The translations under genes and the position numbers were made by a program. From Octopus bimaculoides (lineage: Eukaryota): 44,205 bases of DNA. Shown piece after piece: positions 2,221 to 44,152 of this stretch. How positions within the stretch are numbered: the stretch's first letter is position 1; each line of letters starts with the position of its first letter. The stretch is from contig NC_068989.1 in assembly GCF_001194135.2 (NCBI RefSeq), forward strand, positions 91,309,808 through 91,354,012, read 5' to 3'. A model generated the notes under the pieces. It was not told the origin of the DNA and searched no databases. It was given only the letters and a program-made list of their open reading frames with translations.

Positions 2221-2801
2221 AATATAAAACACAGCAAACGCCAATAATTTCCATTTCAATTTTCATTAAATTCTCGCCTGATGATTTATTAAATCAAAAG
2301 TTGACATCAGACAGAAAAGAATATACAGTAAACATCATACTATAGTCTGGAGTAAATACATCTACAATTTGATTAGATTACAAAAGTACACACCCGGTTT
2401 AAAGTAGACGAACACGATATACTAACAACTTCAGAAATCATTCACATATAATACACATGTACTTGACAGCGCAGGAATATCTTTCCTCTATTGTCTACAC
2501 AAACTCACAACTACATCAACTCTACATCAATAACATTAATGGTTGTCTAAAGGAAAAAGAAATTAGACATAAAATAGACCCTACCGAATCCTCTGTCGGA
2601 TTTATTGATAGCAACAGCGTAGAACAACAGAAACAGCCAACATACACTTTTACCATACACACAAAAAAAAAGAAAACAAAAACAAAATACGGATGAAGGA
2701 AGTATCGCAGAAATTACCAGAAAAATATTCATATAATTACAAGAGATATATAACGGCGCGTTTCAAATACATATCACAGTGATACGTTTGATATATAGAT
2801 A

Positions 2802-3143
2802 TAGAGCAGCGGACTGGCGGTCGTGGGATCGTGGTTTCGATTCCCAGACTGGGCGTTGTGAGTGTTTAGTGAGCGAAAACACCTAAAAGCTCCACGAGGC
2901 TCCGGCAGGGGGTGGTGGTGACCCCTGTTGTACTCTTTTACCACAACTTTCTCTCACCCTTTGTGTCTGTAATTCAAAGGGCCAGCCTTGTTTCACTCTT
3001 TGTCAAGCTGAATCTCCCCGAGAACTACGTTAAGGGTACACCTGTCTGTCGAGTACTCAGCCACTTGAACGTTAATTTCACGAGCAGGCTGTTCCGTTGA
3101 TCGGATCAACTGGAACCCTCGTCGTCGTAACCGACGGAGCGCC
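2802..3143 (+). mobile_element. tRNA-derived SINE, family B (single copy)
   Basis: tRNA-like head AGAGCAGCGGACTGGCGGTC...GGTTTCGATTCCC (B box 2833-2845), followed by about 300 bp of GC-richer body ending at a (GA)n tract. Confidence 0.7.
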
Positions 3144-3608
3144 GATGGAGAGAGAGGTAGAGAGAGATGGAGAGAAGGAGAGAGAGAGAGTTACAAAGGA
3201 AAAAAACCTCTTACGTAGTTTCGAAATACCTTGCATATTCTTTCTCTATTTTTTCATAGTTCCAGTATAGATTTGTCTTATATTTTAATAATTAATACCG
3301 TATGTATGTGTATAAANNNNNNNNNNNNNNNNNNNNNNNNNNNNNNNNNNNNNNNNNNNNNNNNNNNNNNNNNNNNNNNNNNNNNNNNNNNNNNNNNNNN
3401 NNNNNNNNNNNNNNNNNNNNNNNNNNNNNNNNNNNNNNNNNNNNNNNNNNNNNNNNNNNNNNNNNNNNNNNNNNNNNNNNNNNNNNNNNNNNNNNNNNNN
3501 NNNNNNNNNNNNNNNNNNNNNNNNNNNNNNNNNNNNNNNNNNNNNNNNNNNNNNNNNNNNNNNNNNNNNNNNNNNNNNNNNNNNNNNNNNNNNNNNNNNN
3601 NNNNNNNN

Positions 3609-3654
<46 letters not shown>

Positions 3655-3660
<6 letters not shown>

Positions 3661-3870
3661 CTTTGTGTTTCTGTGTTTGTCTCCCACCATCGCTTGACAA
3701 TCGATGTTGATGTGTTTACATCCCCGTAACTTAACGGTTCCGCAAAAGAGACCGATAGAATAAGTACTAGGCTTACAAAGAATAAGTCCTGCGGTTGATT
3801 TGCTCGTCTAAAGGCGGTGCTCCAGCATGGCGGCAGTCAAATGCCTGAAACAAATCAAAGAACAAAAGAA
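3655..3870 (+). mobile_element. bipartite microsatellite-SINE, right arm
   Basis: (TA)n(TG)n, then CCACCATCGCTTGACAATCG...GATAGAATAAGTACTAGG...GGCGGTGCTCCAGCATGGCGGCAGTC...GAAACAAATCAAAGAACAAAAGA. The left arm is not seen because of the gap. Confidence 0.85.
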
Positions 3871-4827
3871 TAGGTTTGGAATACTCTTCGAGTATTACAG
3901 ATTCTATCTCGTGCTGAGCAAATGTAAGTCTGCGCAAAAAACGGCGTCTCGTACTAGTAATATTCACACTGTAAAAACAGTGAAAACTAAGAACCAAACC
4001 TAAAATTCTAAAAAGAAGATTTATCTATTCCACAGCGTCCAGAACAGGAAATGTAATGTGCTAATATCTTCACCGGGTGTATATAAGATTATATATGAGT
4101 CACTGGGAACTTGTTCAAAGATCACCAGCACCAGGAACTGCATGATAACTTATTCTGCCGTGGATACCTGGAGAACGCCACAGCATCTCCGCACACACGG
4201 GGGAAAGCAAGGGGAATAATGACCATAAGCAATACACACGCAAAATGTAGATTAGGCACCAGCATTTGGCAATAGATAGAAGTATTGAAGCCATTCTGTT
4301 ACAGAAAAGCTTCATACTGTTTCATTCTCAATAGCATTGTAACCAAAAGAAACTTATTTCGATCTGCTGGCATCCGGCCAAATTCTTTCTCCAGAAATTC
4401 AAAGCAGACCCTCCTGATGCATGGCGAATAACAATGGTCGACAAATAACACAAGATTATACGAACACGCATCGAACTTAATTTAAGCAGTTATTAATCAC
4501 TTCCTGATTCACCGGTGAGTATAGGGGACGAAAAGACAGATTGAACGGAAACGTGGTTTGGATATAAAATCTTGTTTACTATGTCTATCAATAGACATAG
4601 ATCATACTTTGCAAAATTCTGAAACACTGACATATTTAACACGTTTATCGTTTCTACCATTAATTTATCAAAAACATACTCGCACATATACATGCACACA
4701 GACACACAGAGACAAACACACAAACACACACACAAACACAAACACACATACAAAAACACAAGTACACACACAAAAACACAAGCACACACGCAAATATATA
4801 TATACATGTATATAAATATATGTAAGC

Positions 4828-4902
<75 letters not shown>

Positions 4903-5061
4903 CACATATGCATGTATACACACACACACGCACACATATATAAGTATAAAGTCATATATGTATATATTTATATATAGAGTTTCATATATATACATACATA
5001 TATACATACATATATACATATACATGTATACACACAGACACACACACAGACACAGACACAG

Positions 5062-5127
<66 letters not shown>

Positions 5128-5564
5128 ATATATATGTGTGGATATATATATATATGTATGTAGATATGTCTGTATGCTTATATATATGAGAAAATAAGAT
5201 AACAAAGGAATATATTTTGCTCAGGCATTCCGCTATTAATAACCTGGTGTAGAACTCAATATGTTTCAGAAGAAAGCATTAGTATAGAGCGGTCATAAGC
5301 AAAGGGAATGACAAGGGAATAAGCGACTATCTTATGAACTTCATTAACTTACGGCTGTTTCTGCTATAAGTTGAGTACTTGAATAACACCATACAGCCCA
5401 TCTATTCGGAGTCTCGAATATGAAGAGCAGTTTACTTGGGATGAATGGATGGATGGATGGATGGATGGATGAATGGATGGATGGATGGATGGATATATAG
5501 CTAAGGAATTTGAAAATGCGGTTGAAAACGTCCGGAATGTAAAATTATAAAGAAGACTAATTAA

Positions 5565-5733
5565 CCCTCGGGTAAAGCTTCCGTTGCTGGTTGAACAAGC
5601 GTATAGGTGAAACGTGAAGTCGCAGGCAATATGATTATCAAAAGTACTACCCCAAAATACCGCGCAGAGGGATCGAACCCTCCACTTGGTGACTTTTAGG
5701 AGAAAGTTTTAAGCTTTCAGCTATACTGTGTCC
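5565..5733 (-). mobile_element. tRNA-derived SINE, family C (older relative of the bipartite SINE head)
   Basis: Perfect B box GGTTCGATCCC on the minus strand (5669-5679), followed by TCTGCGCGGTATTTTGGGGTAGT, which resembles ACTGCGTGGCACCTTGGGCAAGT of the bipartite SINE head. Confidence 0.6.
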
Positions 5734-7784
5734 ACATAAACGAGGGTGTACTATAATACTCCTCTCAAATTTCAAGTTGATAAACCCTTGTTCTTATCAA
5801 CTGCTTAAATGTGACCACCTGACATGTTTTATCAGGCTTTCTTTATTCTCTATTCACTAATTTTCACTTTGATGTTATTCGTAACAGGTGAGAGCGCAGG
5901 AAATTTCTCGAGTCGTTGTTAATTTAATGACTTTTTATGATATGATCTGACGCTAGTACTTTTGTGTTTTTAGATTATTCTAATACTCTCCAGGAGTCTG
6001 ATCGAAGTAAAATGTAAGAATTAATGGGGAAGGTACCTATGTTTTATTTTATGCATCTTTCTTATGTGACTATCAATGGCTGAATTTTGAGAAATCTTTC
6101 ATGATGCAGTTACTTGTTGTTGGGTGACTTGTCTTTCTCCTTCGGTGTTTCTGGCGCATATCTAGATCTGAATTTTGTCTTTAAATTCTTGACTTTTATT
6201 TTCATTTCACCGTTAACTTGCCTCATATTCCAAATTCACTCTTCCTATAAATTTCTCAAGTAATTTTTTTGAATCTGTGTTGCAGTGTGACTTACTATAG
6301 GTCATATTCGGATAGTTCCTGAGTTACTTTCTGAAGCATTAATATCTATGTTCAGTAGTTATTAACCCTAAACATAAAAGGAGCCGTGACAGGGAGCCTC
6401 CTTGTAATACACCTCATGTAATGCTTATGGTATTACGTTTTGAATCATCCCTCTCTTTCATACATCCGTGCAATAATTTCCCATTTACCTGCGTAATATA
6501 CCTGCTTATTGCTAGTGCCTCCTTGCTCGTGGTTGGTGCTTCAGGAATCCATGTGTAAGAACACAGCCCAAAGCCGTCTAACAGTCGAACCCTGTCATAC
6601 AGAGACTTTGCTAAATTATTGCTTTGAAGAATTTCTTGATTATCAATTACTCCATTATTCCATATAAATATTACTCTAGATCCGGGTTATTTTCCATCAA
6701 AGTTTTCTTCTGTCGTATTTTCGAATTTGGGAGGTCCAGCGATGCTATAAAATATGCATGTAATGTAATGACGTTTATTTTCTCTACTTCCTTTCTCCTG
6801 TATTGTCATGGTTTCTGTCGACTGGCTTCCACAGAGCTGCTTTCAGACTGGACAGACATTATTTTGTTATCGAATCAGCATTGCTGCATCGTTATTTAGT
6901 ATAACCAGAAACAAACGAATGCTGTTGGGAATGTAAAAAAAACAAAAAAACAAAAAAACAAAAACAAAACAGATCGCCGAACTGTATATAAAAGAATATC
7001 CTAGGTTGGAACCGTCTAAATGAGGATATGTTTAAATTTCAGTTCAATAAGTACCCACATTATATATATTAAGGTCTGAATTAATCAAATGAAGGTCTTG
7101 GCATAAATAACATTCGTACACCTTAACAGAATCTAATATAATGAATAGGTTTGGACGGAAATGGAAGGGAGTGAAAATATTTAGACAAGCTACTTGACAG
7201 CAAATTTTAGAATTTTAAAGTAAAATTGTGGTTTAAGGACTTGGCAGTGTTGCTTTAGTAAATAATAAGATAATTAAGAAAATCGGGTGATTTGCGTAAA
7301 GGTTTCGGACGGTGAAATACAATGCACCACCACGAAAATGCTATTAAAGTATGTTTTAATGTAATCTGAGCAGATGTCAAACATAATTCCAGAACAACCG
7401 GTAGAGAAATGCATACTTTGCAGAGGCAGCTGTCGAATTAACAAACGGAAAATCTGATCAGCGAAATAGCAGTACAAAATAAAACAATAGCAAAAAAAAA
7501 AAAAAAACAGAAAAAAATGAAAATAAACTTGGCAATGTATGTGTGATGGAGGATAATTCTAAAAGAAGATTATTTCTAGGAAGATGAAACTTTCGACATG
7601 TCAAAGACTACCAGTAGTATTTAAAATAATGAAAAATTTAAAGCAAGGATTAGTGTCTTAGTTGTTTAGAACCAGGATAATTCTCAGCAAGCCATCCTAT
7701 GTTCAAAGGCTTACAGCTCAAATTGTTTATGGAAAATTTGACTGCCACTTCTAGAATATCGAGCTTTGTGGATAATTTTGCTTT

Positions 7785-7842: not shown

Positions 7843-8050
7843 TTTTATTCTTCTGCTTGTTTCAGTCATTAGACTGCGGCCATACTGGGGCACCACCTTG
7901 AAAAATTTTGGTCGAAGGAACACACTTTAGAATTTAATTTTTTAAAAAACTGGTATCGTTTTCTTTTGCCGAACCGCTATGTTACGTTGACGTAAATGCA
8001 TCATCAATGGTTGTCAAGCAGTGATGGGAAACAAAGACACACACACATGC

Positions 8051-8081
<31 letters not shown>

Positions 8082-8278
8082 CGTGTGTGTGTGTGTGAGT
8101 GTGTGTTTGTGTGTATGTGTGTATATATATATATATATACGACAGGCTTCTTTCAGTTTCCGACTACCAAATCCACTCACAAGACCTTGGTCGGCTACAG
8201 GCTGTAGTAGAAGATACTTGCCTAAGATGCCACGCAGAGGGACTGAACTCGGAACCATGTGGTGGGGAAGCTTAGCAA
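7843..8278 (-). mobile_element. bipartite microsatellite-SINE, complete (head + (TA)/(TG) microsatellite + right arm)
   Basis: Head with CCACATGGTTCCGAGTTCAGTCCC and GGCATCTTAGGCAAGTATCTTCTAC; internal microsatellite 8038-8139; tail GGTGCCCCAGTATGGCCGCAGTC. Confidence 0.9.
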
Positions 8279-8821
8279 CATAATTTATGTGCTACATGAT
8301 AGACCGATGAGAGTCTCAATTACAAGGGAATTTGAATAATTTGTGTGATGGTTTCCATAAAGAGGGCAAAGGAAAACAACGCTGGAAAGGGGAAATCGGG
8401 ACAAGAAGTGCCCTTAGTATAGAAAATATGTGAATGCATGGACGAAGCGTTTTGTTCCCCGATACGAGACATCCATTAAATCCAACTTGTGAAAGAATCC
8501 GACTCAGAGTCACTCTAGTTCCCAAGAGTAAAATCCTGCACTCTAATACAAACCTGTCTTCCACTGTTGTTCTCCAGATTACAGACGATCGATAAAAATA
8601 TATTCATTTTTATCATAAGCATTTTTGTCACTTTGTATAGAAATTCACAAGAGAAGAGACTTTCATCTCCATCCTTTTACTTCCAAGTGTGGCAGCCGAT
8701 CAGGTCGACGAGAGCAAAGGCAAAGGTGTCTGCACGCAATCCTTTCAACTATGTCTATTTACAGCCTCTCTACAAAGAAACACTGCCGGCCACCAAGCGT
8801 TTCCCAGTTCACCAAAACGAG

Positions 8822-9469
<648 letters not shown>

Positions 9470-11234: not shown

Positions 11235-11403
11235 GGCGCAGGCATGGCTGTGTGGTAAGCAGTTCGGCAGAAGAGAACGATTGAATAAGTACTAGGCTTA
11301 CAAAGAATAAGTCCTGGGGTCAATTTCTTCCACTAAATCCCTTTAAGGTGGTGCTCTAGAATAGCCGCAGTCAAATGACTGAAACAAGTAAAAGAGTAAA
11401 AGA
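11235..11403 (+). mobile_element. bipartite SINE, internally deleted copy
   Basis: GGCGCAGGCATGGCTGTGTGGTAAGCAG is joined directly to the right-arm sequence TTCGGCAGAAGAGAACGATTGAATAAGTACTAGG. Normal tail and (GTAAAAGA)2. Confidence 0.85.
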
Positions 11404-11688
11404 GTATATATATATATATNNNNNNNNNNNNNNNNNNNNNNNNNNNNNNNNNNNNNNNNNNNNNNNNNNNNNNNNNNNNNNNNNNNNNNNNNNNNNNNNN
11501 NNNNNNNNNNNNNNNNNNNNNNNNNNNNNNNNNNNNNNNNNNNNNNNNNNNNNNNNNNNNNNNNNNNNNNNNNNNNNNNNNNNNNNNNNNNNNNNNNNNN
11601 NNNNNNNNNNNNNNNNNNNNNNNNNNNNNNNNNNNNNNNNNNNNNNNNNNNNNNNNNNNNNNNNNNNNNNNNNNNNNNNNNNNNNNNN

Positions 11689-11844
11689 ATAATCTTTGCC
11701 TTCACTACATCTTTGCTGTTACAAGGAGTTTTGTCGGTTTCTCGCTGAACTGCGCCCCACACATTATAATCAAGGGGATTGCAGTCTAGGGAATTAGGTG
11801 GCCAGATGTTAGAGGTGATGCGGTTGCAGAAATTGTCTGACTGC

Positions 11845-11847
<3 letters not shown>
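11689..11847 (-). mobile_element. Tc1/mariner (maT/Tc1-like) transposase C-terminal fragment
   Basis: Translation IWPPNSLDCNPLDYNVWGAVQRETDKTPCNSKDVVKAKI matches the WPxNSPDxNPxDxxVWG motif. Confidence 0.85.
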
Positions 11848-11894
<47 letters not shown>

Positions 11895-12631
11895 TGTGTG
11901 CGCGTTTGTGCGTGTGTACTTGCTGTTGGACAGATATTCATTTGCAAAACAATAAAGAGAGATGTGCAAGATGACGGTTTCGAAAATAGGCCCGGCCGCA
12001 TCTGAATATCGTCTAGTTAGAAAGTGCTTATGTCATATTTTTCTTTATGAGAGTTCAAAGTTAGAAACGAGGTGGATATTTTAAATTAAACTTGAGAAGC
12101 AATTAATGTTGTGGTCGATAGATTTGCCTTCATATTGTTGTTTACGTTTGCGTTTGTTGTTCTGGTTCCTGTTATACAAAATTAAAACTTATATAACGTG
12201 TATATGAAATAGTGTTTATACTGGACGCACGTGAACATACTCTTGTACACAGACTCACTCGGTGATAATCATAACCAAGTAAGGAAACGGCGAGATACGG
12301 GAAGGCGAGACAAAAACGAAAGGAGAAACAAAATACAGAAAGAAAGGGAGCGCGAGAAAACGGGGAATGGTGAGAGATACAACGAAAGTTTAAAGAAACA
12401 AAACCTGATAGATAGTCAGATAAATAGCTAAAGTGATAGAAAGAGTGAAATGTAGAATGAGAGACAGAGAGGAAGAAGGAAGAGAAAAGAGTGAGAGAGG
12501 GCAGCGAGTATGATGTATGCGAGAAACACTTACTCGGTCATGTATAGACAATAAAGCACAAGTACATTTGAGACAAAATGGAAATAAAGAAAATAACAAA
12601 GAGAGAAAGACAGGAAATAGAAGACATAGGT

Positions 12632-13043: not shown

Positions 13044-13076
<33 letters not shown>

Positions 13077-13237
13077 CATTTGTAAATATTTCGAAATTTA
13101 CTTTCTCACGGTCTCTGTCTGAATTGTTGAATATACACACACATATATATACATATAAGTATATATGTACGTATGTATGTATGTATGTATTAATATTTAG
13201 GCAAACACACACATGCATATATAGCGATGAGTATATG

Positions 13238-13284
<47 letters not shown>

Positions 13285-13543
13285 ACACATATAAAGATAT
13301 GTGTCTGTGTATGTGTGAGTATGTAATGTATGTATATGCATACATTCATATATATCTATATATATTATATATCATGAATACACACACACACTATATATAT
13401 ATATATACATATGAGCGTGTATATATAAATATTTATTCATTACACATCTCTCTCTCTCTCTTTTTATTTATCTAGCACTTTCTCCCCAATCTGTGTGTGT
13501 TTGTATGTACATGTGTGTGTATATATGTGTGTATGTATATGTC

Positions 13544-13575
<32 letters not shown>

Positions 13576-14129
13576 TATTTGTGTGTGTGTGTGTGTGTGT
13601 GTGTGTTTGTGTTTGTGTTTGTGTATATATATATATATTATGAGATGTAGCTATATCTGTGCGTATAACTAAGAATATGTAGATATACCATATTGTTATT
13701 CGTCAGGCATAATCACATAAACACGAACATTTATATACACACACATTCGCGTGAATGTGTAGACAAATATTCACTAACGAGCAAAAACTTATTAAGATAC
13801 GTATACGAGGAATTTGAACATATGCCGAGTAATGCATACGCACACGCACACACACAAAAACCCCTTCCCCCACATATATGTATATGCCTGTGCAAGGGGG
13901 TGTGCGGGCTTATGTGTATGAGACATTCTATGTACGTTTTATAGAAAAAGTAATATAGCATTTGTTTAAAGGATTTTGCTCGCAATTACTGTCGCGTCCC
14001 AATATTTGGCTATTTAAAAAAATGTAAGCTAAATATTGAAATTCTAATTTTTATCGAAAAGTTGTGTCTAACCATTCTCTTCTCACACATTATTAATAAA
14101 TGCATATATACACGCTTTTTAAGCTTGGG

Positions 14130-14292
14130 CATGCCTCTGACATTAAGATGCTTGCTTTACAACCGTGGCGTTACCGATCCATCTGCCCTATGTGGCTCTT
14201 TGGGCAAGTGCTTTCTACTATGGGCCTAGGCCGGCCAAATGCATTCTCTATGAATTTATCAGGCAGAAACTATGTGAAAGTCCGTCATATAC
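14130..14292 (+). mobile_element. bipartite SINE left arm, degraded
   Basis: TGTGGCTCTTTGGGCAAGTGCTTTCTACTATGGGCCTAGGCCGGCCAAA...GCAGAAACTATGTGAAAGTCCGTCATATA. Confidence 0.6.
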
Positions 14293-14303
14293 ATGACTGC
14301 AGA

Positions 14304-14720
14304 CTCTTTATTTCTTTACTCATTTACTACTTTCAGCTCGAGAGTTGCAGCCATGCTGGAGCACCACCGTTAGTTTCGCAACACTTTCATAACTTGAAAC
14401 CTCCTCTAATATGTGGAATTTGATGAATGATGGCGTCTGACGCTGCTGCCCTCATTTGTGTTCCCTGCCGTGAGGTAAGTTCACCCTCAACTCTTTCCAG
14501 GAGATCTCGTTTTGCTTTGAAGACACCTACATCACCCCTATATAGGTCTGTCAGACTTTTTGGGATGATACTGAATGGCAGTATTCCCTTGAAACACAAG
14601 CTGTTGCAATATGCTGTCTTGTATCTTGATATCCATGTCGGGGCCAATGACACTCAGCTCTTGTGCTTGAGTAAATTTTAATGCCGAAGTGTGGTACAAG
14701 TCACTCTCTCCGACCCTCCT
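14304..14720 (-). mobile_element. CR1/L2-group LINE, 3' end fragment
   Basis: AYCNSLCFKG...DVGVFKAKRDL...ELTSRQGTQMRAAASDAIIHQIPHIRGG aligns with the C-terminus of the RT-bearing copy at 43026-44152 and has the same 3' tail. Confidence 0.8.
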
Positions 14721-14761
14721 TACATACGTACATACATACATACATACATACATACATACAT
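14721..14761. repeat. (TACA)n tract at the 5' junction of Dong copy 1
   Basis: Read directly. Confidence 0.95.
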
Positions 14762-16603
14762 TATCGCAGAGCTATATTCCAGGATGTCATCCTCTAGGTG
14801 ATATTTATACTTTCCGTAAACCCTTTGTCATTCTTGTTAAGGAAGTCTGAGCTATATCTCATTAGTTCACAAAGAAACAGAAATAGCAAACTTACTCAGT
14901 GTTCCTTTGTGGATGACTTGAAGCTATATGCAAAGAATATGCTGGAGGTGAAAAAGAGCCTTGACATGGTTACACCATTTTCAATGTGTAAAGGGTTAGA
15001 GTTTGGTCAGGATAAATGATGCTGCATGGTTTTGAAAAGAGGGAAAACTGTAAAACAGACTAGTAGCAGCATCTCCTACAATGACTTAACTGTTTCCCCT
15101 ACATCTGACGAGGAATGTTACCGGTATTTTGTGGTGGATGTAAACTTATCTTATGATGGCAAATGTAAGAAGACACGTGTCAGTACAGAATATTACAAAC
15201 GAATAAAGAAAATATGGGCCTCGGAACTCTCTGCATTCCATAAAACAGTGCCAGTACTCATACCAACACCTGGGCTGCTTGAATGGACGCTTCATGAGAT
15301 CCAAGCTATTGATGTGAAAACCAGGAAGATACTAACAAGCACACATAATTTCCACATCAATAGTGATGTAGACCGCCTCTACTTAAAACGGCGGCAGAGG
15401 CTTTTGAATGTCGTATCATATCCCTTCGCCAACATCTTTGAACCACCAAGTGTCGAAGTGCATCCCTTGACCAAGTTTGCATACATGAGGCTGATAACAT
15501 CATAAGACTTGGAAGGCAGCTCCTTGAACAGCATTTCTTGTCTGATAACCTTAAATACATGCTCAAAGGAAGTCACACGACTCTACCGCAACGTATCAGC
15601 AGATGAAAGGATGAGCGTATATGAGCAGAAGACTATGCATGGATATGTCAGTAGAAAGCTGCGTGTTGATAGTAACATTGATCCTCAAAGCAGTCTATCA
15701 TGGACCAATAACCGGATTATTAACTTCCACTTTGAAGGGTATGCGTTTGCAATCCAGGAACAGGAAATTCCAACGAAATACCTGATGCATAAAAAGACCT
15801 GAGACGCAGGAAAAGCAGGAAAATGTGATAACCTATGCAGACTTTTGTGGAGTTAACACCCAAGATATCACCCACATCATAAGTACTTATCCAAAAATGT
15901 CATCACGGCATTATCTACCGATGAAACATGACGTAGTTGCTAGGACACTGTATAATGAGATCCGTCGGAAGGATAGTCCTCAGGCCAAAGAAATAAGAAC
16001 TTACAGTATGGTAGAAGTCGCAAGCACTCATAATAAAAAGGAGTGCTGGTGGAATGTCCCAGTGAAAACTCCAACAGAATGTAAACATAATAGACCTGAC
16101 ATTAATTTGGGACAGAGAAAAGAAAGTGTGTACGGTTGTGGAAATCAGCTGCCCCGAAGTTGTTAATGTTATGCTAAAGATTAGCACAAAAGAGAATACC
16201 TATGCTGAACTATTGAGAAATCTACAGCCACTCTATCCAGATTAGGAGTTCAGGCTTATACCTGTAATTATGTTACACACTGCCTAAATACCAGTCTTGA
16301 CAACTTATTCTTCTCAAAACCAAAAAGGAGAAACCTGATTCGAAGACTACAGCTCCAGTCCATCACTGGAACTGTAAAAATGTGTAAAACTTTCTAGAAG
16401 TTTATCATTTAAGTATATATGAGCACGTCTTGACATGCAACTATATGTATGAGAGTACATACATAAAACAAAACATCTGCATATTTAATTTACATACATA
16501 CAAAAATGCTCTCATGAAGGAGCCGTGGATCTTGGTTAGAAACCGGCTCTTTCTCTATTGGCAAGAAGTCTTGAAATAAAACTGTATAAAGACATACATA
16601 TAC
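14762..16603 (+). mobile_element. R4/Dong-clade non-LTR retrotransposon (RT + CCHC + restriction-like endonuclease), 5'-truncated and decayed
   Basis: FVDDLKLYAK (RT motif, 14906); YKRIKKIWASEL; frameshifted CRLC...HIISTYP zinc knuckle; KHDVVARTLY; WWNVPV..HNRPDI (16092); VVEISCP (16138). Several stops and frameshifts. Confidence 0.9.
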
Positions 16604-16662
16604 ACATGCATATATATATACATACATATATAAATACATACATATATGAATATATTTATGAA

Positions 16663-16715
<53 letters not shown>

Positions 16716-16718
16716 GTC

Positions 16719-16754
<36 letters not shown>

Positions 16755-17201
16755 NNNNNNNNNNNNNNNNNNNNNNNNNNNNNNNNNNNNNNNNNNNNNN
16801 NNNNNNNNNNNNNNNNNNNNNNNNNNNNNNNNNNNNNNNNNNNNNNNNNNNNNNNNNNNNNNNNNNNNNNNNNNNNNNNNNNNNNNNNNNNNNNNNNNNN
16901 NNNNNNNNNNNNNNNNNNNNNNNNNNNNNNNNNNNNNNNNNNNNNNNNNNNNNNNNNNNNNNNNNNNNNNNNNNNNNNNNNNNNNNNNNNNNNNNNNNNN
17001 NNCATCACATGTATGTATCTATGAGAATGTTATGCTTGTGTAATGGTATGTCTGTCCGTACGTGTATGCGCTTCTGTAAATTAAGAATCTATATGCTTGT
17101 TTATGTGTACCAGTATATGCGTGTGGCTTATATTTCCACGTACTTAGTGTTAGTTATAGGCAGACGCACACATTTTTAATATCTGCACATGTGCACATGT
17201 G

Positions 17202-17298
<97 letters not shown>

Positions 17299-18507
17299 GT
17301 CACACACGCATTAAAACATACGCGTACGCACACGTTCCAAACAGAAAGGAAAATATTTTTGTATATAAGACACTTACACAATTTTATTGAACTGAAGTCC
17401 TATTCTCACACCTGGAGTTTCACGTCATAGCATGGAATGTCAAATTCTGTAGTTTCTCGTTATTCAGGCTTGGCTTATGTACATGAAATCGGATTTGCAG
17501 CCTTTCCCATCTCTGTCGTTTCAGTAGCCGGTTATTTATGTTTGTCGATGATAATCGTTTTTCTTTTCTTCCCGTTTTATCAATTCGATTACTCTTCTAT
17601 TATTTCCTTTTTACTCACCTTTGCGGTTGTTTACATGTCAAATTTTTTTATGGGATTTTCCTATGCCAGTTTTTCTGAATTTGATTTTCCTTATATCGTT
17701 TCCCATTGGTCATTTCAGTTATCTTTTGCGGATGGGTTTCTCCTTCGCACAATAAACATCCTGTTTTGTTTCATTACGTCGGGCGTTGCTATACTTGTTT
17801 CACTTGTTCATTGCTTTGTCCAGCACCTATCCTGTATTTTCCTGTTGATTCTGTAATTCATAAATTGCTTTGGTAAAGTTATCATTCGATCCCATTGCTG
17901 TTTTTATATCTGAATACGCACAACGTGTTTTGATATATTTTTAGGTTAGCTTTCAGTCAACATCTCATGTAACGAAAATATGATTATTTATCTTGGGTTA
18001 ATTTTCATATTTTTGCTTTCCTGATGGACATTATTGTATCTTCACTGATATTCCCGCTTCTTTATGGCTTGTTTTTAATTCACACTAACTTTCAAAAGTG
18101 CATTCCTCCTCATATCTGCAACGTGGCATCATCTAATTTCTTCTTGTGAACACAAAATTATTTTACATAATTATACTAAATATTTTCTACGGTACACATA
18201 TGTCCTATCCCAGAAAGTAATTAACGTATGTATTTGCATTGATTGATATTGCCCATTTTATATTTGCATGTACTTTATTCTCTCTTAATTATCAAATGAG
18301 CTTCAATATAGTTTTGCTTTTTTTCTGCTTTGAATTTTCTGTTTTCATATTGTTTTCTAAATTACATTTCCATTTTCGGAAATTTTCCATTTAGGTCAAC
18401 GTTTTCTTTCACCAACGTGCTATTGCGTTTTAGATAACCTGTTGTTTATAACATGGAATATATGGTTCTATATTTAAGAGATGAGGAATTATGATTTGGT
18501 AGACATA

Positions 18508-18547
18508 AACTGAAAGGAGCCCGTCGTATATACATAGGTGTGTATGT

Positions 18548-18587
<40 letters not shown>

Positions 18588-18728
18588 GTGTCTATGTTCT
18601 TTCGATAAGATAAGTATCAGGCTTTAGAAAATACTGGGGTCGATTCATTCGACTAAAATTCTTCAAGTTGGTGCCCCAGCATGGCCGCGGCCTGATGACT
18701 GAAATAAGTAAAAGATAAAAGATAAAAG
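18508..18728 (+). mobile_element. bipartite SINE, 5'-truncated
   Basis: AACTGAAAGGAGCCCGTCGTATA, then (TG)n, then GATAAGATAAGTATCAGG...CTGGGGTCGATTCATTCGACT...GGTGCCCCAGCATGGCCGCGG and (GATAAAA)n. Confidence 0.85.
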
Positions 18729-18882
18729 TATTACATATATATATNNNNNNNNNNNNNNNNNNNNNNNNNNNNNNNNNNNNNNNNNNNNNNNNNNNNNNNN
18801 NNNNNNNNNNNNNNNNTATATATATATATATATATATACATAGATATATACATACATACATACATACATACATACACACACA

Positions 18883-19063
18883 TATTATTAAAGCTGCAAA
18901 AACAGCACAAAAAACTGTTACTCAAAGTTTTACGGAAATGTGAAACTCTGAGTAACAGTTTTTGGTGATGTTTTGCAGCTTTAATAATAAAGTATATTAC
19001 TCTACCTCCGGTATTCGAGTACTATTTTCCCCACTTTGTCTCACATTCATGTGCTTACTCTGG
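18883..19063 (+). mobile_element. Penelope-like terminal-repeat fragment with fold-back inversion and the 3' half of a hammerhead fold
   Basis: Inverted arms 18883-18933 and 18940-18989 around the loop GGAAAT; ACG-GAAA-TGT / GAAA / CTCTGAG / TA / ACAGTT. The PLE assignment is inference. Confidence 0.5.
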
Positions 19064-19654
19064 TATATGTATGTCATTGTTCAGTTTTATTTCAAGATTT
19101 CTTGCCAATAGAGAAAGAGCCTAAGGCTCCATCATTGGAATTTCAACATCAATAACAGGGTATTTTTGTTTGTTTGTTTGTATGCATGTATGTATATGTG
19201 CAGATGTGCATGTTTTGTTCTATGGATGTATTCTGATGCTTATTCTAGATATGCTCATAAATATTTAAATGATAAACTTCTGGGAAATTTTACACATTTT
19301 TACAGTTCTAGTGTTGGTTTGGATCTGTAGTCTTCGAATTAGCTTTCTCCTTTCTTATTTTGAGAAGCCTAATTACTCAAGATTGGTATTTAGACAGTGT
19401 GTTACATATCTCAGAGCCCCAATAAACCTGAACTTGTAAGTTGGATAGTGTAACTGCAGATTTCTCAATTGTTCAGCGTTTCATTTTTACTGATCTTCAG
19501 CTTTATTTTAACATCCGCTGAGTAGGTAATTTCCACAACAGTTTCTCTTCGCTATCCCAAATCATTATAATCAGGTCTGTTGTGCTTACATCTTATTGAG
19601 CTCTTCACAGAGACATTCCACCAGTACTCCTTTTTATTATGAGTAGCTATGGCC
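19064..19654 (-). mobile_element. R4/Dong-clade retrotransposon, second copy (RLE domain + 3' UTR)
   Basis: EYWWNVSVKSSIRCKHNRPD..IWD...VVEI. The 3' UTR GGCTCTTTCTCTATTGGCAAGAAATCTTGAAATAAAACTG is nearly identical to 16543-16584. Confidence 0.9.
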
Positions 19655-19740
19655 ATGTATGTATGTATGTATGTATGTATGTATGTAGGTAGGTAGGTAA
19701 GTAGGTATGTATGTATGTATGTATGTATGTATGTATGTAT
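19655..19740. repeat. (TATG)n/(AGGT)n tract at the 5' junction of Dong copy 2
   Basis: Read directly. Confidence 0.95.
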
Positions 19741-20355
19741 TCATTACAGTTTTAATGTGGTTTCTCGATTTAGCAGCTTCTAGACAATCCGTGTGTCACT
19801 GCATGAAAAGATGTATTATGTGCGTTGCTGAGAAATATTAATTGACACGTAAATTTCTTTTGCAAAAATTGGGAAAGAAGAAATTTTAAAAGGCTGTGAT
19901 GCGCTTAAATTTCTGTAGCATTATTTATCTGCATGACCTGAAGGGCAAGGTAGGAAAATTCGCAAATGTCAACAACGACTAAAATTTAACTGTAACGTAC
20001 ACATTTATTTTATATTTCCTTTCCGCAATTTCAACGATGTTTATAACAGTCTACTTCAAAAATGAATTGAAAGAGAAAACCTAGCCGTTGCCTATTAAGC
20101 CTCAATCACGTAATTTAAAAAACCCCTCTTCATGTGTTAACGATATTTTGAACGCTGCGCGTTATCTTTGTAAGTATCTATATGCACAAATCTCTCACTC
20201 CCTCTCTCTCTCTCTCTATTTCCCTCTGTGTCTCTGTATGTGTGTGTGTGTTCATGCAGTAGGGTGTGCGTGTGTATAATTGTGCATGTAAGCGTTGTTA
20301 TTTATGTACATGTACACACACTCACTCACACACACACAGACATACATATATGTAC

Positions 20356-20405
<50 letters not shown>

Positions 20406-20442
20406 TTATTTATTTATTATCTATCTATCTATATATATATAT

Positions 20443-20780
20443 AATTGCAGCGTGGAAGCTCTTTATAAGCCATTGAAAATAACACACAAAAACCGTTAGA
20501 TTCACTTCAATATTTAAATTTACTTTGCCAAAATATTTTCGTCGCTTTGAGACCGCGACCTGTTTATTGACAAAATTCTGTGCTGCACGGAATTTTGTCA
20601 TTGAACAGGTCGCGGTCTCAAAGCGACGAAAATATTTTGACAAATTAAATTTAAATGTTGAAGTGAATCTAACGGTTTTTGTGTTTCTTAAATGGCTTAT
20701 AAAAACCTTCAACGCTGCAGTTGTTTTCGTTCCAGCGTACGATCTCAGAACAGGTCACTTGCTATGCAAGTACATATCCC
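20443..20780 (+). mobile_element. Penelope-like terminal repeat with 280-bp fold-back palindrome
   Basis: Arms 20443-20583 and 20585-20722 are roughly 90% complementary with a 1-nt apex. The right arm continues to a (CT)n/(TA)n tract and contains a hammerhead-like fold. Confidence 0.6.
20594..20644 (+). ncRNA. hammerhead-like ribozyme fold (type I, minimal, non-canonical N3/C8 core)
   Basis: Stem I TTTGTCA/TGACAAA; core TTGAACA-G; stem II GTCGC/GCGAC; GAAA; palindromic stem III ATAT; UU at the cleavage site. Confidence 0.55.
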
Positions 20781-21002
20781 TCTCTCTCTCTTTATATATA
20801 TATGCATACGTACATTTATATATAAACAAGCAGAGGGCCCCGGCTTCACTTGGATTATAAACTCATAGCCTTTACACAGTACTCTTTGCCTGTAGCATAA
20901 GATTAGCGTATTTCTCAGAAAGTAACACTTATTTTAATACTCAAGAACACATGTTCTGAACTGAAATAAATGTGGTTATACATACACGTGCGCGTCTAGG
21001 TA

Positions 21003-21072
21003 GTCAATACCGGAAGTAAGCATTGAAAAACCTGTTGCTACGTCAATACCGGAAGTGGACATTGAAAAACCT
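21003..21072 (+). repeat. 39-bp-period direct duplication containing two ACCGGAAGT (ETS-like) motifs
   Basis: GTCAATACCGGAAGT...CATTGAAAAACCT starts at 21003 and again at 21042. Confidence 0.85.
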
Positions 21073-21164
21073 TTTTAAAGGAGTGAATCATTTATACATA
21101 AAACAATATTATCTATTTTATATAGTTATAATAAAAAAAATAAATAAATGAAGAGCCTGTTATG

Positions 21165-21236
21165 TATCCGAGGTCAAATTATTATCCGAGGTCAAATTAT
21201 TATCCGAGGTCAAATTATTATCCGAGGTCAAATTAT
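21165..21236 (+). repeat. 18-bp tandem repeat x4 (TATCCGAGGTCAAATTAT)
   Basis: Four perfect units read directly. Confidence 0.95.
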
Positions 21237-21379
21237 TAATGTATCCAAGTATAGGACCGTTTCGCGCAGCCGTTACTGCGTGAAAAGCGAATACTCTCTC
21301 TCTCTCTCTCTCTCAAACACACACATGTCTATTTTATATAATAAATATGTATTTATACATAGATAAATANNNNNNNNNN

Positions 21380-26940: not shown

Positions 26941-27149
26941 ACCGCCAAAGCGAAGCAGTACAGTATGTTGCTTCTAAATTTCTGACAGAGTGAATTACGT
27001 CATGGTACTGTTTTTTTCTTTCTCACAGACGGCACCTAACTGACCTTACTACATTGTGTAGTCGACGAAATCAAAAACAATCAATGTCTATGCTTGAATT
27101 AGAAATATATAATAGCAAAATTTACCCATCGCACCGTGTATATATATAT

Positions 27150-28483: not shown

Positions 28484-29490
28484 TATCAGGTCATAAAGAA
28501 TGAAATGTCCGATTTTGAACTGAAAGTTTATTTTACTTTATTTCAACAAAAAGCAATGCAGTTAATCAAAGTATGCACCTAAATTCTGCACCTAAACACA
28601 ATTTTGCCATTGTATGCACCTAAACACAATTTTGCCATTTTATTACTAGCTTATTTATGCCGGCAGCGAAGGATTCTGGAGAGCAAGAGTTGATGAGATC
28701 ACGAAAAGCTGTTTTTGCATTTTCTTTGCAAAAGGTTGTTTAATGCCTGGAAAACGTGATAGTGAGTGAGTTGGTGCAAGGTCTGGTGAATACGGTGGAT
28801 GACAGAGTACTTCCAAGTTCAGTTCCTGTAACTTGAGTAGCGTTCTTTGTGCAACATGTGGCCGAGCATTGTCTTGCAAGAGAAATGGCCTGTCTCTATT
28901 GACCAATCTCAGTTGTTTAATTGCAAATTCACTCATCATTTCATCCTCCTGGTTGATGTATACATCCGCTGTAATTGACTTACCAGGTCCCATGAAACTG
29001 TACTGAATGACACCAGAGCCGGACCACCGAGTAGACACCATTAGCTCTCTTTGGTGAATATTCTTTTTTGGATTTGTGTTTTGGCACTTCGTCTCTATCC
29101 AACCACCGTTCAGAACGCTAGCGATTGTTGAAAAGAATCCATTTTTCATTACACGAAACAATACGTTGCAAAAATGTTTCACTTTTATGCCGTGACAGCA
29201 CAGAACAGCAAGTTTCAAGACGACGCGTCATTTGATGCTCGTTCAGCTCGTGTGGTACCCACTTGTCCAGCTTCTGTACCTTGCTGACGTGTTTCAGATG
29301 GCCCAATATAGTTGGAACCGAGACATTATACATTCCTGATATCTCACGCGTAGTTTGAGATGTATCCGCTATAGGTTCCAGCTCAGCATTATCGATCTTG
29401 GTCCGACATCTACCACGGAGCTGATGACAGAATATCCCATACTCAGGGATATCCCAGAAACAGCTGTAAAACTGAATTTTTTCCATTAAA
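28484..29490 (-). mobile_element. mariner (D,D34D-type) DNA transposon, inactive
   Basis: WVPHEL, SCNEKW (first catalytic D mutated to N), LLQDNARPH, HPPYSPDLAP (third D lost), frameshifted. TA-TCAGG TIR-like end at 28484; 25-bp tandem duplication near 28587-28639. Confidence 0.95.
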
Positions 29491-43025: not shown

Positions 43026-44152
43026 TGGTAGTTACAACTCAGAGCTCTGGCCATGCTGGAGCACTGCCATTTTGCTACACTGTTATTATTAGATCCTCCT
43101 CCAATATGTATCACTTGGTGTAGAATTGAGTTTTATATAGCTGCCCTCATTTGCACCTCTTACCATGAGGTAGGTTCGCCAGAGACTCCCGAGAGGAAGA
43201 GGTGCAGTCTTGATTTAAAAACGCCTGCATCTACTTTGTGCTGGTTCCTCAGGCTCCTTGGGAGATATTAATATTAAAAAGCTATGGGCCACTTAAACCT
43301 AGGCTGTTGCAGTAACTGATAGCGCGATGGCATTGCTGAGATCTTTGGCACTCTGCAGTGTCGACCCGTTCTGGCATTCGTGTAGCTTTCAATGCATACC
43401 TCTCCCGCCTTCGCTCCAGGTAGTAGAGTCTTAACTGTTTCAGCCTTTCCCAGTAGCTGAGCAGTTGCAAAGACACGATCTTCTTTGTGAAGCATCGCTG
43501 GATTGCTTCAAGGTCCGCTGTTAATTTTACATTATTGGGTGACCATAGCTGGGAGCAGTAACCCAGGCGGCTGAGGACGAATGTCCTCCAGAGGATCATC
43601 ATGGTTTTCTTATCTCTGGTTCTGAATGTTCTCAGGATCCATCCAGCCAGTCGTCTGCACTTTGTCGCCATCCTGGTAATGTGCACTTGGAAAGAGGTAT
43701 CATCACTCATGTCGATACCCAGGTCTCTCACTGATTTAGGCTCTGGGATTGTAATTCCCAGTTGACCAGTGTACTCTGTAAGTTTCATATTCAGTTTTGG
43801 ATACTGGTAGCGCAGGGCTTGGACATTTAAACTGCATATTATTATCCTCAACCCATCTGTAAATTAAGTCCAACTCCTGCTGCAGATGTGCAACATCACT
43901 AAGGTTCTGTATTTTCTGCGAAACGTCCGTATCATCTGCGTAGCTAGCAAGGATGGCTACCGGCAGTTGGGGACATGTCTGAGAAGGCCACTATGAAAAG
44001 CAGTGATCCCAAAACCGTGCCTTGTGGAATACCGCTCACTATTTGTGTTTTATTGAGGTGGCTCCATTAGCCACTACTGCCTGACTTCTATCTTTCAGAA
44101 AGTCATGTAACCACTCTCCAAGCTTTCAAGCTATGCCGAGATCACGCAGTTA
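43026..44152 (-). mobile_element. CR1/L2-group LINE: RT domain to 3' tail, 5'-truncated and decayed
   Basis: FLKDRSQAVVANG, SGIPQGTVLG, YADDT (43931-43942), VRDLGI, WILRTF, YCSQLWSP, YWERLKQLRLYYLERRRERY. 3' tail GGCAGTGCTCCAGCATGGCC. TA-rich flanks. Confidence 0.93.

Follow-up and report, generated by a model that had tools for sequence, protein, structure and literature searches.

Remnants of a probably Dong-like retrotransposon in Octopus bimaculoides and its lineage's probable integration into (CATA)n microsatellites

A 44,205-nucleotide (nt) stretch of Octopus bimaculoides DNA (assembly GCF_001194135.2, contig NC_068989.1, positions 91,309,808 to 91,354,012 of the forward strand), hereafter called the window, contains two decayed copies of a retrotransposon without long terminal repeats (non-LTR). 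By direct reading of the sequence, copy A spans 14762-16603 on the plus strand and copy B spans 19063-19654 on the minus strand. When 14762-16610 was compared with the window by blastn, copy B was recovered at 19644-19063 of the minus strand with 72% identity over 606 columns; it corresponded to the last ~580 nt of copy A and was the single further match. Comparison of the repeat arms 16545-16603 and 19063-19121, the terminal 59 nt of the two copies, gave 93% complementarity. A tblastn search of the 44-kb window with full-length relatives found no third copy, only copies A and B. The two oppositely oriented copies with truncation points at 14762 and 19654, as described in the original prediction, were thus borne out by blastn, repeat arms, and sequence reading. 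The copies are most probably old, inactive, 5'-truncated insertions of a Dong-like element whose lineage integrates into (CATA)n. The association of this lineage with its repeat is orientation-specific and two-sided, its 5' truncation is variable, its copies form tandem arrays, and it carries a 3' hairpin and a protein combining reverse transcriptase (RT), a CCHC knuckle, and a restriction-like endonuclease (RLE).

The junctions of both copies could be read to the base. At the 5' end of copy A, CATACATACAT is followed by TATCGCAGAGC at 14761/14762, and at that of copy B, read in its own sense, CATACATACAT is followed by GGCCATAGCTACTCAT at 19655/19654. Both 5' ends therefore abut sense-oriented (CATA)n directly, with zero bases between, and this fusion, also proposed beforehand, was confirmed by sequence reading and Tandem Repeats Finder (TRF). 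No element-like sequence was found upstream of either 5' array in the window by blastn, tblastn, or hairpin pattern search. The two copies also share a 3' end consisting of CTTGAAATAAAACTG, six variable bases, a G, and then ACATACATATAC; it reads CTTGAAATAAAACTGTATAAAG followed by ACATACATATAC in copy A (16592-16603) and CTTGAAATAAAACTGAACAATG followed by ACATACATATAC in copy B (19074-19063), so that the AAAACTG-containing end noticed earlier recurs in both as AAAACTG-N6-G-ACATACATATAC. Because the window is very rich in simple repeats, the frequency of such 5' junctions by chance was estimated using a generous rule, namely (CATA)3 in any phase with at most one mismatch directly upstream and non-repeat sequence downstream. 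This rule was satisfied by 0.21% of oriented window positions, which gives ~4.5e-6 for two independent junctions.

Of copy A, ~1.84 kb remains, beginning in RT motif B (RAIFQ-D); of copy B, ~0.59 kb remains, beginning just ahead of the endonuclease. The different truncation points indicate that the copies are separate insertions and not a duplication. Two runs of N (assembly gaps), at 16755-17002 and 18745-18816, both lie between the copies. Uninterrupted sequence at 13044-16754 holds copy A with both of its junctions, and that at 18817-21369 holds copy B. The continuity of each copy is thus sound, and only their spacing and relative orientation depend on the scaffold. A 107-nt near-perfect palindrome, foldback or miniature inverted-repeat transposable element-like, was observed at 18883-18989 (arms 18883-18933 and 18940-18989); on one side of it lies a plus-strand (ATAC)n array (18820-18885), on the other copy B with its 3' end. 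The sequence downstream of copy B accordingly runs from three CATA units through the palindrome segment to a CATA-type array in the opposite orientation.

Copy A has accumulated ~5 in-frame stops and ~6 frameshifts in conceptual translation. The stitched translation nevertheless retrieved 235 homologues (best E 2.9e-147, 45% identity), and 25 of them were aligned (alignment A1). Alignment A1 shows RT motifs with an invariant FVDD, a GGRG motif within a long thumb and linker, and a C-x2-C-x8-H-x4-C knuckle in which C617, C620, H629, and C634 are invariant. In the endonuclease, at least 90% of sequences have P702 and D703, the IIEFSCP block has a conserved E, and K734 is invariant; translation made remnants of the CCHC-RLE part visible in both window copies. 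The intact element is ~4 kb long with one open reading frame (ORF), which is uninterrupted over 1153-1202 amino acids (aa) in the relatives' loci L006-L009. Searching four full-length ORFs against Pfam yielded RVT_1 (E 1e-22 to 5e-26) and a weak zf-RVT, with no match to Exo_endo_phos, the apurinic/apyrimidinic (AP) endonuclease, at E<=1 and no N-terminal zinc finger. R2 proteins were the sole matches of the A1 profile in PDB, and the alignment to the zebra-finch R2Tg chain 9dou (1390 residues) extended from the RT through the endonuclease, as far as residue 1380 (E 1.6e-36). Pfam and PDB searches with the copy A translation itself returned nothing significant, because copy A is too decayed. 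The RT, CCHC, and RLE together with the R2 profile matches identify an endonuclease-bearing non-LTR retrotransposon of the R2 group. Judged by their sequence, copies A and B are old, inactive remnants of a single-ORF element of this RLE-bearing kind.

The flanks of relatives' loci were then compared with those in the window. These loci come from unrelated assemblies, and their DNA similarity to the window is weak (blastn), the relatives being 36-45% identical in protein to the decayed translation of copy A; the 19 loci from a metagenome scan are mostly short contigs that end at or before the repeats and are informative on ends, not on counts. In L001, a full-length copy lies between (ACAT)22 and (ACAT)23, (ACAT)n being the same repeat as (CATA)n. 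The L009 contig is bounded by (ACAT)26 and (ACAT)28, and L026, whose family shares 36% identity with copy A, has (ACAT)20 on one side and (ACAT)26 on the other. Each of the three is one full-length copy flanked at either end by a long array, with unrelated DNA outside the arrays. L003 carries (ACAT)24 at its 3' end. L002 holds four copies head-to-tail, each ending in ...TAGAAATAAAATTTAATTAAAG, with three inter-copy junctions visible. At two of the three junctions the spacer is (CATA)n, of 7 units in one and of 50 plus 7 units in the other. At the third (~6500-6515), nothing but CATATA separates the copies, the following one being 5'-truncated; an additional (CATA)7 precedes the first copy. The flanks of these five loci support the view, put forward in the original prediction, of an endonuclease-bearing non-LTR lineage inserting into (CATA)n.

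A different repeat adjoins the sister families, whose proteins share 50-60% identity with those of the (CATA)n families. (ACTT)n, which equals (CTTA)n, was found on both sides in L004, L005, and L008, at the 5' side in L006 and L007, and at the 3' side in L010 and L011; L004 contains a second, 5'-truncated copy (8014-8520) between ACTT arrays. The remoter relatives L018 (789-830) and L023 (68-100), with 27-34% identity, adjoin (AAT)n, i.e., (TAA)n, the classical Dong target. In L018 this repeat follows the 3' end of one copy, and the RT-region match of a second copy starts ~760 nt further on. In L025 (Sitophilus oryzae, GCA_002938485.2), a 5'-truncated distant relative at 2522-5989 lies between long (AT)n arrays and ends in GGATATGT-A23-(TA)34, an end suggestive of a lineage that carries an A-run and targets (TA)n. 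The only explanation that accommodates all of these loci is target-specific insertion into a simple repeat that differs from lineage to lineage. Two further repeats were observed at these loci. In the 3' untranslated region (UTR) of L002, 29 tandem copies of a 15-nt unit (ATATTGTCTGGGTCT) occupy 2909-3342, between the stop codon and the hairpin described below. In L001, a ~57-nt unit (CAAGGCTGAGTCTCTACTGGACTACACC...GGTGCTGG) occurs twice, at 4449-4505 and 8818-8872, flanking the element beyond its (CATA)n arrays and preceded each time by (GATA)n; at GGTGCTGG the upstream unit breaks off and passes into (TACA)n.

A hairpin of the form GCC-TT-(6 bp)-TTGTT-(6 bp)-C-GGC was present 40-50 nt upstream of the repeat in every locus that reaches the 3' repeat. 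The loci were found with a relaxed regular expression; a strict first pattern had matched one locus only. Eight inner stems were obtained, all different and all fully paired. In their alignment (A2), 96% of cells were paired and changes on both sides occurred in 8 of 9 pairs, values that none of 500 shuffles reached, and pairing fell to 24-49% when the partners were slid as a control. The presence of G-U pairs on the sense strand indicates that the structure is one of RNA. A decayed hairpin is still seen in copy A (Table 1), and that of copy B has been lost to a deletion near 19123-19136. A weak 5-bp look-alike at window position 27045, with no repeat downstream, was taken as chance. By analogy with the 3' UTR of R2, the hairpin is probably a binding site, or handle, for the RT.

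Table 1. Positions of the two element copies, their parts, and the adjoining repeats in the window.
Feature	Position	Strand	Basis
Upstream (CATA)n array of copy A, 10 units, reads TACA	14721-14761	+	TRF, period 4
Copy A body, 5'-truncated and decayed: RT motif B, FVDD (YxDD equivalent), thumb, linker, CCHC, RLE, stop, 3' UTR	14762-16591	+	Translation; tblastn, P0001 residues 220-810
RT catalytic motif region of copy A (KLTQCSFVDDLKLYAK)	14888-14935	+	Frame-1 translation; F294/D296/D297 invariant in A1
CCHC knuckle remnant of copy A, CRLC..ITHIISTY; last Cys changed to Tyr, internal frameshift	15830-15900	+	Translation; A1
RLE remnant of copy A, WWN..HNRPDI..VVEISCP..K..ENTY	16040-16290	+	Translation; PD, E, and K columns conserved in A1
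ORF stop of copy A (...KMCKTF, stop)	16395-16397	+	Sequence; all relatives end ...KTF(x)n, stop
Decayed hairpin of copy A, GCC-GT-GGATCT-TGGTT-AGAAAC-C-GGC, 4 of 6 inner pairs left	16522-16547	+	Alignment A2
Copy A 3' junction: ACATACATATAC, then degenerate CATA/TA repeat (~55 nt), remnant of element tail and target array	16592-16647	+	TRF
Copy B 3' junction: ACATACATATAC, then unique sequence	19063-19074	-	Sequence reading
Copy B body, 5'-truncated and decayed: linker end, RLE, stop near 19274, 3' UTR	19075-19654	-	blastn; tblastn, P0001 residues 677-810; translation
Upstream (CATA)n array of copy B, 21.5 units, reads ATGT on the plus strand	19655-19740	-	TRF

Full-length relatives start with a conserved block of ~70 aa, R..W[TS]..[EL]...L..CY...GY..R...W...P....Q.L.DQ. 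It formed three helices in two AlphaFold2 models, built from 2 and 19 sequences, with a core pLDDT of 92-94, and its hidden Markov model matched the N-termini of Sitophilus-type insect elements with E down to 1e-20. R4/Dong elements have a SANT/Myb-like N-terminal domain without zinc fingers (Schön and colleagues, PMC7998251), and the residue pattern of the block (W[TS]..E...L..CY, GY..R...W, Q.L.DQ) looks SANT/Myb-like. At the nucleotide level, a short GC-rich hairpin was observed within the first 30 nt of full-length relatives (L004 2491-2520, L007 57-90, and L008 101-130), with the stems AAGACG..CGTCTT, GCCGCC..GGCGG, and ACGTC..GACGT, respectively.

Several results weigh against the interpretation of the copies as (CATA)n-targeted Dong-like insertions. 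Downstream of copy B, only three CATA-like units precede unique sequence, so if the target of copy B was an array, the insertion point lay at its extreme edge. The evidence from the window's own genome consists of just two copies, both of them inactive. The N-terminal block had no significant match in Pfam, including an hmmscan of 19 members, and none in Foldseek/PDB below E 3, so that the description "Myb/SANT-like" is drawn from the literature and the residue pattern. Dong and R4 carry a 5' self-cleaving ribozyme like that of hepatitis delta virus (HDV) (PMC3774820). The window copies are without 5' ends; in relatives, Rfam found no ribozyme family at the 5' ends of seven loci (E<=1; covariance models catch such ribozymes poorly, and no descriptor search was made); the same scan gave only spurious miRNA-like matches, on repeats and on hairpins elsewhere.

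R4/Dong elements combine an RT with a restriction-enzyme-like endonuclease and insert into ribosomal DNA (rDNA) or microsatellites. The insertion target is (TAA)n in Dong, DongAg, and DongBg (PMC3812793), and for Dong this holds in most insects, molluscs, and cnidarians. Dong-R4 long interspersed elements (LINEs) are abundant in cephalopod genomes and were recently active in octopus (PMC13282606, PMC8967140), and Sitophilus oryzae is among the R4/Dong-like taxa (PMC7998251). The repeat make-up of the window itself resembles that of a cephalopod. The lineage described here has the site specificity of this clade, with a microsatellite, (CATA)n, at both window copies and at five relatives' loci. 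Its target is not the (TAA)n of Dong proper, however, and only the remoter L018 and L023 are found at (AAT)n. The traits of Waldo and R1, an N-terminal AP-endonuclease and two ORFs, were absent, the lineage having a single ORF with a C-terminal RLE. Its thumb block reads ILxW[TS]xxE[IL]xx[IL]D[IV][KR]TRKxL[TS]..G.FH, and that of HERO, R2, and Utopia mostly [VLI][RK]xWLxL (PMC7650587 Suppl. Fig. 6B). Over ~25 aa only, the comparison weakly favours R4 (R4_Hmel INWSQTDLN..LQRIINTH..MTTHRKH) over HERO. We consider membership of R4/Dong likely, with a HERO-type element as the main alternative. The R4/Dong label of the original prediction can be kept as a probable one that the architecture fits (single ORF, RT-CCHC-RLE, no zinc finger, helical N-terminal domain).

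The element may instead belong to another RLE clade, e.g., HERO or the NeSL/Togen group, in which case the (CATA)n targeting would stand and the family label would be wrong. Some HERO families are microsatellite-specific, and Togen targets (TG)n (Kojima & Jurka 2015); the HDV-like ribozyme that Rfam did not find at the relatives' 5' ends also speaks for such a clade, as does a second homology search, seeded with the Sitophilus protein, in which the best 120 of 585 matches included no Bombyx protein. We consider it unlikely, as the thumb block resembles R4_Hmel and not the RxWLxL of HERO and R2 (a weak point), and Pfam found no N-terminal zinc finger. Moreover, the N-terminal helical domain is common to Sitophilus-type elements, and Sitophilus oryzae is R4/Dong-like (PMC7998251). 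The remoter relatives sit at (TAA)n, the Dong target, and Dong-R4 is by far the commonest annotated RLE-bearing LINE class in octopus.

If the copies are Dong-like insertions into (CATA)n, integration would proceed in an order of events that we infer by analogy. As in R2 and Dong, the element protein would bind the hairpin of its own RNA. The ribonucleoprotein would then recognise the repeat duplex, probably via the N-terminal domain and/or the CCHC region and not by the nuclease alone, and the endonuclease, again as in R2 and Dong, would nick the (TATG)n strand. A few CATA units at the 3' end of the RNA may pair with the nicked strand, as the original prediction reasonably suggested, and the 3'-OH of that strand would prime reverse transcription. 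Incomplete reverse transcription would leave 5'-truncated copies joined directly to the upstream array, as in the window. Each insertion would regenerate a (CATA)n tail open to a new hit, which would explain the tandem arrays. The original prediction had gone further and proposed a new endonuclease specificity; this was an overreach, since the N-terminal domain, the CCHC region, or pairing between RNA and target may read the repeat instead.

The history of the target was followed in a neighbour-joining tree of 13 sequences (711 columns, 200 bootstraps). L026 and L009, which branch off deepest within the group, both belong to families at (CATA)n. The ACTT family L005 grouped with the ACAT families L001 and L002, as (L005,(L001,L002)), with 93% support, and the ACAT family L003 fell inside an ACTT group at 100%. 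By parsimony over 11 families, (CATA)n targeting would be old, with at least two switches to or from (CTTA)n, two repeats that differ by one base per unit. No residue of the N-terminal domain, including its third helix, separated the ACAT from the ACTT families; in the rest of the protein, eight variable columns did so. One of these, column 1056 (approximately residue 595 of P0001, ~20 aa before the CCHC), holds Pro or Gly in six of six (CTTA)n families and N, Y, S, or A in five of five (CATA)n families. No other disjoint column is close to invariant in either target class (here, Pro in five of the six (CTTA)n families). The column may offer a lead to specificity, though no clean determinant.

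Such a pattern could arise if the choice of repeat were set mainly by pairing of the RNA 3' repeat tail with the nicked target, the protein having a loose preference for AC(A/T)T-type repeats. This would explain why the lineage flips between (CATA)n and (CTTA)n, and the interleaving of ACAT and ACTT families at 93% and 100% support, the absence of class-separating residues from the N-terminal domain with only eight variable columns elsewhere, and the single base per unit between the targets all fit it. However, a tree of 13 sequences is a thin basis, a protein determinant could lie in the Pro/Gly column ~20 aa ahead of the CCHC, and in R2 the nick is positioned by protein domains. Pairing as the main determinant therefore seems improbable to us.

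A very unlikely alternative is that the element has no target specificity and merely carries a (CATA)n 3' tail, the upstream arrays being tails of older neighbours or later microsatellite growth. It is known that the 3' ends of non-LTR elements can give rise to microsatellites (PMC3812793), and among the consecutive copies of L002 an upstream array can be a neighbour's tail. In the window, however, neither an element nor a 3'-UTR hairpin lies upstream of the 5' arrays, and each of L001, L009, and L026 holds one full-length copy, flanked at both ends by long arrays outside which the DNA is unrelated. Copies truncated at different points all abut the repeat directly, and the sister families show the two-sided pattern with a different repeat. 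Mere coincidence in a microsatellite-dense genome, for which the approximately nine CATA-type arrays in 40 kb of the window might be cited, is effectively refuted by the probability of ~0.002 per junction (~4.5e-6 for both, by a generous estimate) and by the recurrence of the association in five unrelated loci.

Compared with known systems, the (CATA)n-inserting lineage resembles Dong, DongAg, DongBg, and the Dong-like members of R4 in its single ORF with RT, CCHC, and RLE, in its helical N-terminal domain, and in having neither AP-endonuclease nor N-terminal zinc fingers. As in Dong, insertion into the simple repeat is orientation-specific, the element ends in the repeat, and remoter relatives lie at (TAA)n. 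It differs from Dong in its tetranucleotide target, (CATA)n, or (CTTA)n in sister families, versus (TAA)n, and in that Rfam detected no 5' HDV-like ribozyme; the likeness to Dong is one of architecture and target type. With R2 (R2Bm and R2Tg; 8gh6 and 9dou), the only PDB match, it shares the RT-CCHC-RLE core from the RT through the endonuclease. R2 uses a structured 3' UTR as a handle for the RT, to which the covarying 3' hairpin of the lineage corresponds, and both leave 5'-truncated copies typical of target-primed reverse transcription. In contrast, R2 has one or more N-terminal zinc fingers plus a Myb domain and a single 28S rDNA site, whereas the lineage has no zinc finger and a microsatellite target, and protein identity between them is low. 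Waldo (WaldoAg1/2 and WaldoFs1; R1 clade) targets (ACAY)n, which includes (ACAT)n and hence (CATA)n, but, with two ORFs and an AP-type endonuclease at the N-terminus, it is a member of an unrelated clade, and the shared target reflects convergence and not kinship. The microsatellite-specific HERO families and Togen ((TG)n; NeSL-related) are likewise RLE elements at simple repeats; their thumb-region motifs differ in the one block compared, and the Togen target is a dinucleotide.

Known microsatellite-targeting non-LTR elements include Waldo (ACAY)n, Mino AC, Kibi TC, Koshi TTC, Dong TAA, Togen TG, and some HERO families (Kojima & Jurka 2015; PMC3812793). No published RLE-bearing element specific for (CATA)n or (CTTA)n was found in the full-text literature searched; Repbase Reports lay outside the search, so earlier deposition is possible. 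Microsatellite targeting by Dong is thus already known, and the tetranucleotide-targeting relative is apparently new, as we found no report of one.

Other transposon debris was also observed in the window, all on the minus strand, at 28655-29218, 11343-11969, and 43282-43851. It comprises two mariner/Tc1-type transposase fragments (...HPPYSPDLAP... and ...NSLDCNPLDYNVWG...) and an unrelated non-LTR RT thumb fragment.

Site-specific RLE retrotransposons are current models for RNA-templated gene insertion, and the main question is how target choice is encoded and how it changes. With close families, two targets one base apart, at least two switches, and a small covarying hairpin, the lineage is a convenient natural experiment that could separate protein-encoded from RNA-encoded specificity; what is most interesting is that the target has switched repeatedly by one base and that the RNA handle is compact and covarying. 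For annotation, the lineage accounts for part of the association seen in repeat-rich genomes of invertebrates between LINE fragments and arrays of (CATA)n or (CTTA)n, and it warns that such arrays are both insertion hot spots and assembly break points. More speculatively, and with a low probability in our estimate, a deep and widespread Dong-like lineage may read tetranucleotide repeats and have flipped repeatedly between (CATA)n and (CTTA)n with its DNA-binding domain almost unchanged, the RNA repeat tail beside the hairpin perhaps helping to choose the target. If this were true, retargeting could be achieved by rewriting a few RNA nucleotides, or one or two residues near the CCHC, and these small single-ORF elements would be a natural model for programmable insertion by RLE-bearing retrotransposons.

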